Shown piece by piece: positions 3,860-62,042 of a stretch of 64,000 nt of DNA (the stretch's first letter is position 1; every line of letters starts with the position of its first letter). The stretch lies in the sequence record NC_025447.1; one strand, written 5' to 3'. A program made the translations under genes and the position numbers. The notes under the pieces were generated by a model. The model searched no databases. It worked only from the letters and a program-made list of their open reading frames with translations, and was not told where the DNA came from.

Positions 3860-4714
3860 TTGTATATGTTAGACATTTCAGATTTTCTTAATTTTAAAAA
3901 ATATTCAGTACTTGAACATATCAACGAATTTCTGAATTCTACTACACCATTTGGTATCAGTACATCAGATGCATACGATGGATATACAATCTTCCCATAC
4001 AATGACTTTCAAATTTCCGTCAAAAAAGGTTTTACAAAAGAAGTTGCAATTCGTGATGTAGTAATGTATAGCGATTCTTCTATTTCTTACTGTCATGACG
4101 TGAACAAGTTTGAATCTCTTTCAACACCTAATTGTTCATACTACAAATCCCATGACACGATGATGTATAAAGAACAACATATTAATGGTGTTTCGTTCTA
4201 TAAAACTAGCAGTGATAAATCATATACATCTAGAGATGATTTTGGAAAATACACATGTACTATGCACACGGATAATGAAAAAACAAATTACACTCATTCA
4301 TTCGAGTCCAAATTCCAAGAGAGTGAAGTTTCAAATATCACTATACAAGAACAGGTTTCAGAAGGCATTGTATATCGTAGTACTGCATTCTTTCGCATGA
4401 AAGATATTGCCACAGGCAGACCAATGATGTACAATATTGACATATACATGAAAGGTGATATATCCGAAGTAGTGATTAGTACTGGTTATCGTGAAAAATA
4501 TACAGTTACAATGGAATCACCAGATGCATCATTAGTTCACCTCTTTAACAATTTATATACATTCCAATTCGAACTTAGTTTCGATCCAAATGAATATCAA
4601 ATATTTGATATATTAAAAAGTAATATTATTAATAAGTTAGAATATTACTACAAGTTAGGTGGTAAGATGTGCATAGTTAATACTATGTTACATAACATAA
4701 AAGAAACATTATAA
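3860..4714 (+). CDS. hypothetical protein
   Basis: 284 aa ORF, GAGG RBS. Confidence 0.75.
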   Translation: MYMLDISDFLNFKKYSVLEHINEFLNSTTPFGISTSDAYDGYTIFPYNDFQISVKKGFTKEVAIRDVVMYSDSSISYCHDVNKFESLSTPNCSYYKSHDTMMYKEQHINGVSFYKTSSDKSYTSRDDFGKYTCTMHTDNEKTNYTHSFESKFQESEVSNITIQEQVSEGIVYRSTAFFRMKDIATGRPMMYNIDIYMKGDISEVVISTGYREKYTVTMESPDASLVHLFNNLYTFQFELSFDPNEYQIFDILKSNIINKLEYYYKLGGKMCIVNTMLHNIKETL

Positions 4715-5027: not shown

Positions 5028-5035
5028 AAATAATG

Positions 5036-5063
5036 TGAACATATTAGATTCTTGTGATATAAT
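5036..5063 (+). promoter_or_regulatory. promoter, GGACA-type -35, 16 bp spacer, TGnTATAAT
   Basis: TGAACA-N16-TATAAT with TG extension, inside inverted repeat TGTGAACAT/ATGTTCACA. Confidence 0.65.
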
Positions 5064-5096
5064 GTTCACATCTTTTTTTTGATAACGGAGATATAG

Positions 5097-6744: not shown

Positions 6745-6770
6745 GACAAATGATAAGTTAATGATATAAT
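6743..6770 (+). promoter_or_regulatory. promoter upstream of ncRNA copy A
   Basis: GAGACA-N16-TATAAT with TG extension. Confidence 0.65.
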
Positions 6771-6772
6771 AT

Positions 6773-6807
6773 AAGGTGACAACATAATATGTTAGTCACC
6801 TTTTTTT
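6773..6807 (+). terminator. intrinsic terminator overlapping the promoter start site
   Basis: AAGGTGACAACATA-a-TATGTT(a)GTCACCTT plus T run. Confidence 0.7.
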
Positions 6808-6829
6808 AATCCTGAAAGGTTCCCATAAG

Positions 6830-7312
6830 GAAATGATTAAAAGCCTAATCCACTCGAAAATGTAGAGGGTAGATGAGTAGTCCTTTCAGTACGAACAGCA
6901 GATGAAACCCGTTAGATGATGGCATAGTTTGAACCACTCACGGCAATGCGGCTGTATAAAGAACTCCAATAGGATAAAGAGAGTTCCTCGATAGACATAT
7001 AAGGATCGCACCTTACCAATTATCTAAGGGAGATTTCATAAGAAATATGCGGTCGGAATTATACAATATAGTTGCGTCCAAATTTTGTGAAATCAAATAC
7101 AAGTACTGGTCATATGGTATTTGTATTATGTGTCGGGATGTTTAAGACCGACGACCGTTGCTACAAGAACCGCGATAGAGAGAAACAGAGCAACCCGCTT
7201 TCGTCTCGTAAGAGAATTCGTGATATGAACTATGTGAAGGCCACCAGCGTCAAATTTTTTTGTTCTTTCCCCTGCGGGGGGATGAAATATGCTCAAGCAA
7301 ACCCCGTCAATA
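6830..7312 (+). ncRNA. candidate large structured non-coding RNA, copy A
   Basis: no credible CDS; colinear homology to 61497-62042; covarying stems; cUGCGg and GUAA tetraloops. Confidence 0.75.
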
Positions 7313-28299: not shown

Positions 28300-28301
28300 T
28301 T

Positions 28302-28329
28302 TGGACATTTTAAATCTTAGTGATATAAT
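28302..28329 (+). promoter_or_regulatory. promoter, GGACA type, upstream of clpP
   Basis: TGGACA-N16-TATAAT with TG extension. Confidence 0.7.
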
Positions 28330-28363
28330 ACTCACTACAACGAAATAATAGAGGAAATTAACA

Positions 28364-29884: not shown

Positions 29885-29964
29885 ATTGCTGTATATCAAT
29901 TTTCATCGATCAAAAAATGATCTATATAAGCTAAATACCCAAGGAATCATTGTTACTAGGGTAG

Positions 29965-37604: not shown

Positions 37605-37612
37605 TATTGTAT

Positions 37613-37641
37613 GGGACATAATGTCCCATACATGATATAAT
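37613..37641 (+). promoter_or_regulatory. promoter, GGACA type
   Basis: GGGACA-N17-TATAAT with TG extension; -35 lies inside hairpin TATGGGACA-ta-TGTCCCATA-like. Confidence 0.65.
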
Positions 37642-37672
37642 GTTGTTATCATAATACAGAAGGAGATATAAA

Positions 37673-43022: not shown

Positions 43023-43123
43023 ACTTGTCATAGGTTGCAGTGCACTTGCTGCATATATGCTTTTTTCCGCACCAACCAATGTATTACTGCTAATTTGGGC
43101 AGTTGTTATATTAGCAGTACTTT

Positions 43124-43147
43124 AAAAGCACCCTTGTGGTGCTTTTT
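43124..43147 (+). terminator. intrinsic terminator
   Basis: AAAAGCACC-cttgt-GGTGCTTTT. Confidence 0.75.
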
Positions 43148-43182
43148 CTATTTGTGCAAATAAAAAGCAATGTGACTTTTCC

Positions 43183-43224
43183 TTGATATAGGTCAAGAGA
43201 AATAACCTGTTCTGACGCTATAAT
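43183..43224 (+). promoter_or_regulatory. putative FNR-activated class II promoter of nrdD
   Basis: TTGAT-atag-GTCAA (43183-43196) and TATAAT (43219-43224); box centre at -41.5. Confidence 0.65.
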
Positions 43225-43285
43225 GTTGTCTGGTGATATTAAATATCTTCACCCCCAGATGATTTCAAAATACAAGGAATGTACA

Positions 43286-45091
43286 ATGCAATTAGATAAA
43301 TTATATACCGATGTAACAAATTTCCTAAATCAGAGTAATACTGATCTTACTAATGAAAACGCTAATAAAGATGCAAAATGCGTCAATACACATAGAGATT
43401 TACTAGCAGGTATTCTATCTAAGCATTATTCACAAGATGTTATTCCCACCGAGTTAATGCAATGGCATAATGATGGATATGGTCATATTCATGATTTAGA
43501 TTACTATATTAGCCCATTGACCAATTGTTGCTTGGTTAACTATCCTGATATGCTTAAAAACGGCTTCACTATTGGTTGTGCTAAAATTGAAGAACCAAAA
43601 AGTTTCAGTGTAGCTTGCACAGTACTGACACAAATTGTCCAAGCTGTTGCCAGTTCCCAGTATGGTGGTCAATCTTTGGCTCACATTGATGTCGGATTAG
43701 AACCTTACGTTCAAAAGTCATGGGATAAGCTGTTAGAAAAACAAAAGAAATATAATCTAAGTGATGAATTCATTGAAGAAGAACTACGTAAAGAAGTGTA
43801 TGATGGCTGCCAAACATTACTTTACCAAACTAATTCAATGATTAGTACTAATGGTCAAGCTGCATTTATTTCTCTTAGTTTAGGTCTTAACACTTCTAAA
43901 TTTGGCAAATTAATCACTGAACAGTACTTAAAAGTCCATGAGAATGGTTTAGGTAAAGATAAGATTACTCCAGTGTTTCCTAAAGTAATTTTCTTTTTAC
44001 AAGATGGTATAAACATGAATACCAACGATAGTAATTATGACCTTAAACAGTTAGCTATGCGTTGTGCATCAAAACGAATCTACCCTGACTTTGTTTCAGT
44101 ACCATTAAATCACAAAGTGACTGGAAGTAGTAGTACTGCTGTAACACCGATGGGCTGTCGTTCATTCTTAGGAAAATGGGAAGATTCAAATGGAAATGAA
44201 CAATACAACGGTCGTTTCAATTTAGGTGTGGTTTCTATCAATTTACCTCTAATTGCTCTTGAGAGTACTTCTGACGGAGAGTTTTTTGATAAGATAGACG
44301 AGCATATGAATATTGCATATCGTGCTCAGATGAACCGCGTAGAGCGTTTAAAAGGCACTAAAGCAAAGCAAAATCCAATTTTGTTCATGGAAGGTGCATT
44401 AGCACGTTTAGGTGCAGAAGAAACCATTGACAAGCTATTTTACAATGGTTATGCTAGTATTAGTATTGGTTATGTTGGACTTGTTGAATGTTCAGAAATC
44501 CTCACTGGTTCTATCAGTAAGGAGTTTTGTATGTCAGTACTGAATTATATGAAAGTAAAATGCGATGAGTTCAAAAAAGAGAGTAATATAGCTTTTAGTC
44601 TATATGGAACTCCAGCAGAGTCACTTTGTTATAAATTTGCACGTTGTATTGAAGCAAAATATCCTTCAGTACTAAAACGTGATTACATCACAAATTCCTT
44701 CCATCAACCAGTATGGGTAGAAAGTTCTCCATTTGATAAATGGAGTTATGAAGAAGGCTTTGCTTACCTAAGTAACGGTGGAAACATCAGTTATGTTGAA
44801 TCTCCAAACTTAGCAAACAACATTCAAGCACTTGAAACATTAGTTAACTATGCTTACACGAAGATACCATATTTTGGTATTAACCAACCAGTTGACCATT
44901 GTTATGAATGTGGCTTCCAGGGTGAGTTCAGTGTAGATAAACATGGTTTCCACTGTCCGGTATGTGATAATCGTAATGAGAAGACAATCTCAGTGATTCG
45001 TCGTGTTTCTGGTTACTTGGGTAATCCTTCTTCGCGTGGATTCAATAAAGGCAAACAACAAGAGTGTTGTGAGCGTATTCAGCACAAATAA
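43286..45091 (+). CDS. nrdD: anaerobic (class III) ribonucleoside-triphosphate reductase
   Basis: HIHDLDY, TNCC, QYGGQ, YPD, PMGCRS, NLGVVSINLP, YGTPAESL, CxxC..CPVC, RRVSGYL glycyl motif; no ATP cone; AAGGA RBS before ATG 43286. Confidence 0.97.
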   Translation: MQLDKLYTDVTNFLNQSNTDLTNENANKDAKCVNTHRDLLAGILSKHYSQDVIPTELMQWHNDGYGHIHDLDYYISPLTNCCLVNYPDMLKNGFTIGCAKIEEPKSFSVACTVLTQIVQAVASSQYGGQSLAHIDVGLEPYVQKSWDKLLEKQKKYNLSDEFIEEELRKEVYDGCQTLLYQTNSMISTNGQAAFISLSLGLNTSKFGKLITEQYLKVHENGLGKDKITPVFPKVIFFLQDGINMNTNDSNYDLKQLAMRCASKRIYPDFVSVPLNHKVTGSSSTAVTPMGCRSFLGKWEDSNGNEQYNGRFNLGVVSINLPLIALESTSDGEFFDKIDEHMNIAYRAQMNRVERLKGTKAKQNPILFMEGALARLGAEETIDKLFYNGYASISIGYVGLVECSEILTGSISKEFCMSVLNYMKVKCDEFKKESNIAFSLYGTPAESLCYKFARCIEAKYPSVLKRDYITNSFHQPVWVESSPFDKWSYEEGFAYLSNGGNISYVESPNLANNIQALETLVNYAYTKIPYFGINQPVDHCYECGFQGEFSVDKHGFHCPVCDNRNEKTISVIRRVSGYLGNPSSRGFNKGKQQECCERIQHK

Positions 45092-45099
45092 GGTAAATT

Positions 45100-45432
45100 A
45101 TGGATTTAAAGCCAATTGTGGTTAACAAATACAAAGAACCGTATGATGTGTATATTGGACGTGGGTCTAAATGGGGAAACCCATTTACCCATATTAAAGA
45201 TAAACAAACTAAAGCCGAATTCATTGTTAGTACAAGAGAAGAATCAATTGAAAAATTCAGAGAATACATTATTGAACGTATTTCTTGTGGAGAAGTTAAG
45301 ATTGATGAATTACTTGAACTCGCAGGGAAACGCCTTGGTTGTTTCTGTAAACCCAAATCATGTCACGGCGATGTTCTTGTCGAAATAGTGAGTGCAATAT
45401 TAGATGAATTACCAGACGATAATCAAGGATGA
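45100..45432 (+). CDS. DUF4326 family protein
   Basis: YDVYIGRGSKWGNPF, LAGKRLGCFCKPKSCHGDVL. Confidence 0.85.
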   Translation: MDLKPIVVNKYKEPYDVYIGRGSKWGNPFTHIKDKQTKAEFIVSTREESIEKFREYIIERISCGEVKIDELLELAGKRLGCFCKPKSCHGDVLVEIVSAILDELPDDNQG

Positions 45433-45874
45433 TTTAGTAAATGGAGAGGGCGTTCGCTGCTCTTTATTTGTTAGTGGGTGTTCGCACGGATGTGATGGTT
45501 GCTTCAATGAAGAAGCATGGGACTACCGAAGTGGACAAGAGTTCAGTACTGAAACAGTTGAGATTATACTACAGGAACTAAAAAAACCATATGTTAGTGG
45601 TTTGTCACTTCTAGGCGGCGATCCATTAATGAAAAAGAATATAGATGAAGTTTTAAATCTATGCAAAGTAGTTAAAGAAACTTATCCTAGTAAAACTATT
45701 TGGTGCTGGAGTGGGTATACTTTAGATGAGATTATGAAAAATCATGCTAAAGATATACTTCAGTACTTAGATGTATTAGTTGATGGTAAGTTTATCGAGT
45801 CCGAAAAGAATTTAAAATTACCTTTCCGTGGTTCAAATAATCAAAGAATACTATATAAAAATAAAGATTTTTAA
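45404..45874 (+). CDS. nrdG: anaerobic RNR activase (radical SAM)
   Basis: DLVNGEGVRCSLFVSGCSHGCDGCFN, LLGGDP, DVLVDGKF, FRGSNNQRI. Confidence 0.96.
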   Translation: MNYQTIIKDDLVNGEGVRCSLFVSGCSHGCDGCFNEEAWDYRSGQEFSTETVEIILQELKKPYVSGLSLLGGDPLMKKNIDEVLNLCKVVKETYPSKTIWCWSGYTLDEIMKNHAKDILQYLDVLVDGKFIESEKNLKLPFRGSNNQRILYKNKDF

Positions 45875-45877
45875 CAT

Positions 45878-45900
45878 AAGCACCCGTTGGGTGCTTTTTT
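45878..45900 (+). terminator. intrinsic terminator
   Basis: AAGCACCC-gtt-GGGTGCTT plus T run. Confidence 0.8.
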
Positions 45901-45908
45901 GTTATGTA

Positions 45909-45916
45909 TATAAATA
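45909..45916 (+). promoter_or_regulatory. T4-type late promoter
   Basis: TATAAATA 35 nt upstream of a structural-type gene. Confidence 0.65.
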
Positions 45917-51992: not shown

Positions 51993-51996
51993 ATTT

Positions 51997-52026
51997 AAAG
52001 CTCGTCTATTGACGGGCTTTTCTTTT
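51997..52026 (+). terminator. intrinsic terminator
   Basis: AAAGCTCGTC-tatt-GACGGGCTTT-tctttt. Confidence 0.8.
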
Positions 52027-52037
52027 ATGTGTATAAT
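52009..52037 (+). promoter_or_regulatory. sigma70-like promoter
   Basis: TTGACG-N17-TATAAT, -35 inside the terminator arm. Confidence 0.7.
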
Positions 52038-52059
52038 TGAATAAAAATAGGAGGAAATT

Positions 52060-55335: not shown

Positions 55336-55341
55336 TAAATA
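55336..55341 (+). promoter_or_regulatory. possible late promoter
   Basis: TAAATA after a 10 bp hairpin (55302-55332), 30 nt before ATG 55371. Confidence 0.45.
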
Positions 55342-58789: not shown

Positions 58790-58790
58790 C

Positions 58791-58819
58791 TTGACATAGA
58801 AAAAGTAATTATGTATAAT
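58791..58819 (+). promoter_or_regulatory. consensus sigma70 promoter
   Basis: TTGACA-N17-TATAAT with TG extension. Confidence 0.85.
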
Positions 58820-58820
58820 C

Positions 58821-58851
58821 AGAGAACTTCATATGGAGTTCTCTTTTTTTT
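58821..58851 (+). terminator. intrinsic terminator
   Basis: AGAGAACTTC-atat-GGAGTTCTCT plus T7. Confidence 0.8.
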
Positions 58852-58864
58852 ATAAGGTGATAAA

Positions 58865-61437: not shown

Positions 61438-61438
61438 C

Positions 61439-61466
61439 GGGACATAACACATCCTAGTGATATAAT
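61439..61466 (+). promoter_or_regulatory. promoter upstream of ncRNA copy B
   Basis: GGGACA-N16-TATAAT with TG extension. Confidence 0.7.
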
Positions 61467-61496
61467 GTATATTGTAAAATGACAACGGACATTGAA

Positions 61497-62042
61497 AAAT
61501 GGATAATGAGAACCTACTTCTCTTGAAAATGTAAAGGATAGATGAGCTTTACCGTTGTAGCGAACAGCAAAAGAAACCTGTTAGAGTACTGGCATTCAAA
61601 CAAACACGATGTAAGACCACGAATCACGGCGACACGGCTGTATAAAGAACTCCGATAAGCATACAGAGAGTTCCTAGATAGATGTATAAGGTTCGCACCT
61701 TACCAGATTTGCTAAGGGAGTTTAAGAATAGCGGACGCAATTTTACAAGAAAGTTGCGTCCAAAATTTGAGAACAGGTACTACTTTGATCGAATAGAGTT
61801 AGTACTGAGTGCTGTTGATGAAAAGACCAGCGACCGTTGCATATGACTGCGATAGAGAGAAACCGAGCAACCCGCTTTCGCTCTCTAAATTTTGGTACAA
61901 GAAAGATCCGTCCAAAATTTGAGAAATTCGCAATTCGATAATATCCGATGCCATCATCGTCAAGAGAGACTTAATTGTCTCTTTTTTATTACCTTCATTC
62001 CCCTGCGGGGGGATGTAATAGTCCTCAACAAATCCCGTCAAG
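61497..62042 (+). ncRNA. candidate large structured non-coding RNA, copy B
   Basis: colinear homology to 6830-7312; dedicated promoter; covarying stems; cUGCGg loop. Confidence 0.75.

Follow-up and report, generated by a model that had tools for sequence, protein, structure and literature searches.

Introduction

The consensus site of the oxygen sensor FNR is TTGAT-N4-ATCAA, and the positions from which FNR is described as activating are −41.5 (class II) and −61.5 (class I) (PMC4886647). The nrdDG genes of the host are given as FNR-activated and NrdR-repressed (PMC3458845 and PMC2892513, citing Boston & Atlung 2003 and Roca et al. 2008). These sources back the background of the initial annotation of the present DNA, namely class II activation by FNR at −41.5 and FNR activation of E. 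coli nrdDG. Sites for host regulators are described in phages as well: cyanophage phosphate genes are preceded by PhoB pho boxes (PMC10976474), and alphaproteobacterial phages have CtrA sites (PMC9437464). For phages CBB and GAP32, promoter classes that include an ATAAATA late motif have been predicted, and these agree with the classes found in 121Q (PMC5259590).

The surveys of phage ribonucleotide reductase (RNR) genes that were found in the open-access literature make no mention of FNR, NrdR, or promoters, and full-text searches of that literature returned no report linking FNR to a phage nrdD. Many phages carry both aerobic and anaerobic RNR, and those whose bacteria live in the gut or in plant rot encounter hosts at ever-changing levels of oxygen. 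No description of how phages choose between the two enzymes was found in the open-access literature.

The DNA analyzed here, called the window, is a 64,000-nucleotide stretch of Escherichia phage 121Q (NC_025447), a Rak2-like jumbo myovirus of the genus Asteriusvirus with a genome of 348.5 kb. Position 1 of the window is position 186001 of NC_025447. An FNR-type box and a −10 hexamer precede the class III RNR gene nrdD. From the sequence, 121Q and its relatives probably restrict expression of the NrdD enzyme to infected cells that lack oxygen.

The nrdD-DUF4326-nrdG Unit of Phage 121Q

The features of the locus are listed in Table 1. The terminator upstream of the box is also annotated by ARNOLD in phage G17, and its stem is preserved in relatives through compensatory changes. 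With a second terminator closing the unit, nrdD, the DUF4326 gene, and nrdG form a self-contained unit. The terminator had been proposed to insulate the unit, and its stem, its T run, the G17 annotation, and the compensatory changes all support this.

Table 1. Features of the nrdD locus of phage 121Q. Positions are those of the window.
Feature	Position	Strand	Basis or remarks
Rho-independent terminator of the upstream unit	43124..43146	+	9-bp stem and T run
FNR-type box TTGATatagGTCAA	43183..43196	.	9/10 to TTGAT-N4-ATCAA; TTGA/TCAA core intact
−10 hexamer TATAAT (candidate class II promoter P1)	43219..43224	+	Sequence; 22 nt after the box
Predicted P1 transcription start	43230..43232	+	Inferred from the usual 6–8 nt after a −10; box centered at −40.5 to −42.5
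TAAATA, late-promoter core (candidate P2)	43240..43245	+	Identity 1.00 and fixed spacing in jumbo lineages
Conserved TTCACC just past TAAATA	43248..43253	+	P2 start region or part of the P1 leader
Shine-Dalgarno AAGGAA of nrdD	43274..43279	+	Sequence; ACAAGGA invariant in the Asteriusvirus alignment
nrdD, class III (anaerobic, glycyl-radical) RNR, 601 aa	43286..45091	+	PF13597 (NRDD) 2.6e-166, PF01228, annotation
DUF4326 gene within the operon	45100..45432	+	PF14216 6e-24
nrdG, radical-SAM activase of NrdD	45404..45874	+	PF13353 2.6e-53, annotation
Terminator closing the nrdD-DUF4326-nrdG unit	45878..45896	+	Sequence scan; also annotated in G17

Two nrdD starts are found in databases, an ATG at 43223 within TATAATG (622 aa; PBECO4 and UE-S1) and the start at 43286 (601 aa; 121Q, G17, and others). 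Read from 43223, the frame is interrupted by a stop in A4, JNE01, and ph0011, and the ATG is replaced by ATT in EJP2. The 43223 start was therefore rejected, and the true start is 43286 with its AAGGAA Shine-Dalgarno.

Two neighboring genes are worth noting. Phage A4 has an extra 120-aa gene directly after nrdD (L008:3810-4172) that is annotated as 'pyruvate formate-lyase'; it may encode a small GrcA/YfiD-like glycyl-radical protein. Upstream of the box, a small ORF (43035-43163), whose product of about 40 aa looks hydrophobic, ends right at the terminator. The annotations of G17, ph0011, and SD-1_S14 list it as a gene, and that of 121Q does not.

The FNR-Type Box and the −10 Hexamer

The box, reported previously as TTGAT ATAG GTCAA with a 9/10 match, and the perfect TATAAT downstream of it were both found in the sequence where the initial annotation had placed them. 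As in class II FNR promoters, the box is a consensus-type site with an intact core. Its sole mismatch in 121Q is an A to G change at the first base of the right half-site. The center of the box is 43189.5, and the earlier calculation that a +1 at 43231 puts it at −41.5 is right. Among public reads, three wastewater metatranscriptomes gave few and short contigs to either side of the site, with no accumulation of 5' ends, and the best-matching run was probably DNA.

The promoter was also said to have no recognizable −35, which agrees with the presence of AGAGAAAT 16–18 nt upstream of TATAAT and with the absence of the site from a two-hexamer scan. The TG of an extended −10 is likewise absent before this TATAAT (cgcTATAAT). 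Other sigma70-like promoters of this phage carry both elements. A −10 lacking both −35 and TG should be weak alone, as expected for a promoter that needs an activator.

A CRP site has the form TGTGA-N6-TCACA. The half-sites here are TTGA/TCAA, not GTGA/TCAC, in every lineage. A T rather than a G at that half-site position distinguishes FNR from CRP sites.

A bare 9/10 box is not beyond chance. With up to one mismatch allowed, 19 matches occur in the window against 10.6 ± 2.8 expected. Since such matches are common, the significance of the box comes from its position and its conservation.

Conservation of the Box

The box region was aligned across 10 Asteriusvirus genomes whose regional nucleotide identity falls to 73-82%. 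TTGAT, TCAA, and TATAAT are invariant in this alignment, with no indel between them, and the flanks are variable. In EJP2 the remaining intergenic DNA hardly aligns, yet all three elements are kept. UE-S1 and CMSTMSU have a perfect ATCAA half-site and thus a 10/10 box.

An alignment-based search of viral contigs gave 80 nrdD loci. The box has an intact core in all 12 of the jumbo-phage loci, which represent several genera (NrdD 71–100% identical), and is a perfect 10/10 palindrome in 10 of them. Its center lies 83.5–96.5 nt before nrdD. Conservation in related phages had been called for as a check, and the box passes it in the 10 Asteriusvirus genomes and at the 12 jumbo loci alike. The perfect form of the box, TTGATCTAGATCAA, includes two GATC (Dam) sites.

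For a footprint, 13 lineages were stacked without gaps, and the mean column identity was taken. It is 0.95 for the half-sites of the box and 0.83 for its central four bases. The upstream flank has a value of 0.61 and the spacer 0.66. The TATAAT position has a value of 0.56 and the next 15 nt 0.55, TATAAT being clade-specific among jumbo lineages. The highest value, 1.00, belongs to a TAAATA sequence further downstream, and no indel occurs between it and the box.

The named relatives have hosts in Escherichia, Salmonella, Cronobacter, Pectobacterium, Erwinia, Yersinia, and Serratia, and one record is assigned to Xanthomonas. That record, Xanthomonas phage XbC2 (OP292654; reported on Xanthomonas vesicatoria), has an nrdD region 89% identical to that of L141, an Erwinia-phage-like locus with a perfect FNR box.

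The TAAATA Element and the Promoter Classes of 121Q

In every jumbo lineage, exactly 43 nt separate the box from the downstream TAAATA sequence, which the initial annotation had missed. The T of TAAATA comes 50.5 nt past the center of the box in all of these lineages. With TAAATA at −11 to −6 or −12 to −7, the box would be centered at −61.5 or −62.5, which is the class I position.

The DNA between the box and TAAATA is unrelated among jumbo lineages. Asteriusvirus has TATAAT at +22, and the type of L138, L142, and L156 has TGaTATAAT at +23. The GAP32/CBB type has a CCCC-N7-GGGG hairpin and a T run, which offer only TATTTT or TATTAT at +23. No −10 is found at the class II distance in L153 (Yersinia-phage type) and L154.

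The hairpin has the form (T)ACCCC-N7-GGGG(T)A followed by a T run. It is located at 921-950 in L139 (GAP32) and at the same place in L140, L141, L145, L152, L153, and L154, so that the GAP32, CBB, and Yersinia-phage types have a terminator after the box instead of before it. The arms of the GAP32-type hairpin resemble the NarL/NarP heptamer TACYYMT (6/7).

The distance from TAAATA to the start codon ranges from 31 to 47 nt among jumbo lineages. A conserved RNA hairpin around TAAATA was considered and rejected, as RNAalifold gave no consensus pairs; pairing is good in 121Q, JNE01, and L141 and poor elsewhere. Given the variable distance and the lack of a conserved RNA structure, the position of TAAATA is tied, as a property of the DNA, to that of the box and not to translation signals. 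The record of fHe-Yen9-03 annotates TAAATAA as a −10. Phages of the phiWec179 type have TAAATA at +42.

Two recurrent promoter types of 121Q emerge from the gaps between genes, both in the window and in the first 50 kb of the genome. The sigma70-like type is a strong promoter composed of TTGACA or (T/G)GGACA, a spacer of 16–17 nt, and an extended −10, TGnTATAAT. It is found in the gaps 5028-5096, 28300-28363, 37605-37672, 51993-52059, 58790-58864, and 61438-61470, and examples elsewhere in the genome precede ssb, primase, and other genes. The recurrent form TGnTATAATG often has a hairpin directly after it.

The late type has an nnTAAATA core, and virion structural genes begin about 35–50 nt downstream of it. 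The window contains this TAAATA at 43240-43245, 45911-45916, 55336-55341, and 29932-29937, and positions 1-50000 of 121Q contain it before the genes at 3901, 18837, 20701, 23014, 33090, 41591, and 47546. On the coding strand of the window TAAATA is about 4-fold depleted, with 21 copies against roughly 88 expected from an estimate based on base composition. The copy before nrdD, atTAAATAtc, is 46 nt upstream of the ATG and so lies at the late-type distance. Its late-type context and the depletion suggest that it has promoter activity. 121Q and its relatives encode sigma factors of their own, gene 167 and a gp55-like protein.

Two paralogous noncoding elements (6745-7071 and 61438-61798) were also seen in the window. 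They share about 250 nt at roughly 76% identity. Both contain long conserved blocks and hairpin-forming segments, and each is downstream of a strong TGATATAAT promoter. Neither matched a tRNA, a tmRNA, or an Rfam family, even at E<=1. These elements may be an undescribed phage RNA.

Recurrence and Enrichment of the Box

In four non-jumbo lineages, too, nrdD is preceded by an FNR-type box with a good −10 at +21 or +22. Justusliebigvirus ESCO32 (L014) and L146 have the box TTGACtaagATCAA with TAAAAT at +22. The phiWec179-type coliphages (L150) have TTGATcctgAACAA with TAAAAT at +21. Aeromonas phage phiA019 (L016) and L151 have a box with TGaTAAAAT at +21, and L158, whose nearest relatives are Vibrio phages, has one with TATAAT at +22. 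L150 and L158 share the 121Q order of terminator, box, −10, short leader with Shine-Dalgarno, and nrdD.

The ESCO32- and phiA019-type phages differ in two respects. The upstream gene ends within the box, its stop codon being overlapped, and past the putative −10 the nrdD leader contains a hairpin and T run that resemble a terminator (L014 at about 655-690, L016 at about 350-380, and also L146 and L151). This hairpin could be an attenuator, or only the terminator of the upstream gene. The overlap and the hairpin are awkward for a simple promoter reading in these phages.

A −10-like hexamer is present at +21 to +23 in 14 of the 17 box-bearing loci, whereas about 13% would have one by chance (an estimate from base composition). 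Core-intact boxes are 44-fold enriched in the 90 nt upstream of nrdD relative to elsewhere in the same loci (15 boxes in 7.2 kb of upstream DNA and 14 in the other 295 kb; p = 2.5e-17, Fisher test). The enrichment is still extreme after the loci are collapsed to about ten lineages.

Other phage nrdD loci contrast with this pattern. T4-like slur03 has no box, and its nrdD overlaps the upstream gene. The nrdD of T5-like SP15 has a canonical TTGACA-17-TATAAT promoter, and that of Vequintavirus Alma sits in an nrdB-grx-nrdD operon. No box was found at nrdD loci of 39–41% identity.

In 164 kb of 121Q, 11 core-intact boxes were counted against about 6 expected. The nrdD box is the only one of them with a −10 at +21 to +23 or a TAAATA at +43, and these 164 kb gave no further FNR box with promoter surroundings, of the sort that a phage FNR regulon would call for. 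The composite box-N22-TATAAT occurs at no fewer than 118 loci in viral contigs, at least, and none of the matches listed is near nrdD. This count serves as a baseline for chance and not as a test of association.

The lineages are akin through nrdD, with 59–100% identity and L158 at 42%. Because of this kinship, the recurrence may in part reflect transfer of nrdD together with its promoter and not independent invention. Retention of the box amid randomized flanks argues for selection.

Proposed Mechanism

The elements, their geometry, conservation, enrichment, and recurrence suggest a mechanism whose steps are predictions: binding of FNR, activation of transcription, its start point, and its dependence on oxygen. 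When the host is anoxic, the [4Fe-4S]-FNR dimer would occupy the box and bring in host RNA polymerase, most likely as a class II activator at −41.5 for a start near 43231. The sigma70 and alpha-CTD contacts on which FNR depends would have to persist during infection by a phage with a sigma factor of its own. Transcription of nrdD-DUF4326-nrdG would follow, and the oxygen-labile enzyme and its activase would be made when they are able to work. The same bound FNR would be at about −61.5 (class I) relative to TAAATA, two helical turns on, and both promoters may be served, P1 early through sigma70 and P2 late through the phage sigma. With the candidates P1 and P2 only 21 nt apart, a single FNR on the box would face the two of them.

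That the box is a working FNR site is very probable in our judgment. The proposal of the initial annotation, a phage nrdD promoter wired to host FNR, gains support from conservation, geometry, and recurrence. Class II activation through TATAAT is, with fair probability, the main or early route in 121Q. It is favored since this TATAAT is perfect, genus-invariant, and at the canonical distance, and since the same geometry occurs in lineages lacking TAAATA. Against it stand the low identity of the TATAAT position over the jumbo lineages and the two lineages, L153 and L154, that have no class II −10.

Alternative Explanations

FNR may instead act mainly or ancestrally on TAAATA from about −61.5/−62.5, with TAAATA read by a phage late sigma or weakly by sigma70; the TATAAT of Asteriusvirus would then be a later addition or a second promoter. 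Apart from the box, no element but TAAATA is kept unchanged by all jumbo lineages. TAAATA is locked to the box and not to the start codon, and no conserved RNA structure surrounds it. It behaves as a late-promoter core of 121Q, and in L153 and L154 it is the only route available. The −10 annotation in fHe-Yen9-03 and the +42 copy in the phiWec179 type point the same way, −61.5 is given as an accepted activating position of FNR (PMC4886647), and this route best explains the frozen 43-nt spacing. However, TAAATA lacks the −7 T of a sigma70 −10, and the other late-type TAAATA sites in 164 kb have no FNR box. We know of no precedent for FNR activating a phage-sigma promoter, which also counts against this route. 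Three non-jumbo lineages have a good class II −10 and no TAAATA at +43, and TATAAT is invariant within Asteriusvirus, EJP2 included. TAAATA as the main target is thus rated as somewhat unlikely. A combined arrangement, in which one FNR dimer serves tandem promoters, an early sigma70 class II promoter and a late phage-sigma class I promoter at TAAATA, would explain why the distance is frozen over several genera; it is regarded as doubtful.

If FNR is set aside altogether, the palindrome could be the operator of another dimeric DNA-binding protein, of phage or host. It is 14 bp long, most 121Q genes have no known function, and the fairly conserved central nTAG is not required by FNR. The box nonetheless equals the FNR consensus, is perfect in 10 lineages, and has the T that discriminates against CRP. 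It recurs in phage families that share a host type and nrdD and not a common gene set, and a tblastn search with E. coli FNR found no detectable FNR/CRP homologue in any Asteriusvirus. As the sole box in a promoter context in 164 kb, it is unlike the operator set of a phage regulator, and this explanation is considered very unlikely. A box that is a chance match, or a neutral relic moved with nrdD from a bacterial nrdD promoter and now functionless, would fit the frequency of 9/10 matches, the FNR regulation of host nrdDG, and the many copies of the exact composite motif in viral contigs away from nrdD. It would not fit a box kept while its flanks were randomized, the positional enrichment, or the several lineages in which the box has improved to a perfect palindrome. 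The host layout also differs from that of the phage. Chance or relic status is therefore hardly credible. A working FNR site remains the preferred reading.

Significance

A conserved putative FNR site before nrdD would be a simple answer to the choice between RNRs, in that the phage reads the oxygen sensor of its host. Oxygen would join the few signals (phosphate, nitrogen, and cell cycle) for which lytic phages are believed to rely on regulators of the host. The model implies that host sigma70- and FNR-dependent transcription is usable during jumbo-phage infection, and it predicts an altered phage yield in anaerobic fnr mutants. Some of the relatives are candidates for therapy or biocontrol (E. 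coli and Salmonella). The region also offers a compact, naturally insulated promoter cassette that is predicted to be anoxia-inducible. The coupling of FNR to a late promoter is possibly the more original aspect; the tandem arrangement, if true, would for the first time show a phage-sigma-dependent promoter under activation by an oxygen sensor of the host.

Comparison with Known Systems

The TAAATA of 121Q is like the T4-type late promoters (TATAAATA) and the ATAAATA of CBB and GAP32 in its sequence, its depletion, and its distance from start codons (PMC5259590). Unlike the members of that late class, the copy at 43240-43245 precedes a nucleotide-metabolism gene and is locked to an FNR box, a combination seen at no other late-type TAAATA site in 164 kb of 121Q.

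Like the class II FNR promoters of E. coli (Wing, Busby, and co-workers, as summarized in PMC4886647), the 121Q promoter has a consensus-type box 22 nt before a good −10 and no usable −35, the textbook arrangement for an activator that contacts RNA polymerase from −41.5. It differs from them in belonging to a strictly lytic jumbo phage, in being predicted from sequence, and in having a second conserved promoter-like core 15 nt past the −10.

The phage has the same NrdD and NrdG pair as E. coli and Salmonella, and the same logic of FNR and anoxia is proposed for it. The intergenic sequences of phage and host nrdDG are unrelated. In E. coli, nrdD is preceded by a pair of FNR-like boxes spaced 31 bp apart, of which one is overlapped by an NrdR box, whereas the phage has a single box. 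The best NrdR-like match in the phage nrdD region is 8/14, which is the background level, compared with 12/14 in E. coli. A host-type nrdDG promoter with both FNR and NrdR was ruled out by the single box and the lack of an NrdR-like box.

Host-regulator sites in lytic phages are known already from PhoB and CtrA; for the pairing of FNR, oxygen, and a class III RNR, no report was found in the open-access literature. As in those cases, so far as the sources describe them (PMC10976474 and PMC9437464), 121Q is lytic and has a putative site for a host regulator before its own genes, by which its expression would track the condition of the host. It differs from them in that the regulator would be FNR, the signal oxygen, and the gene a class III RNR.
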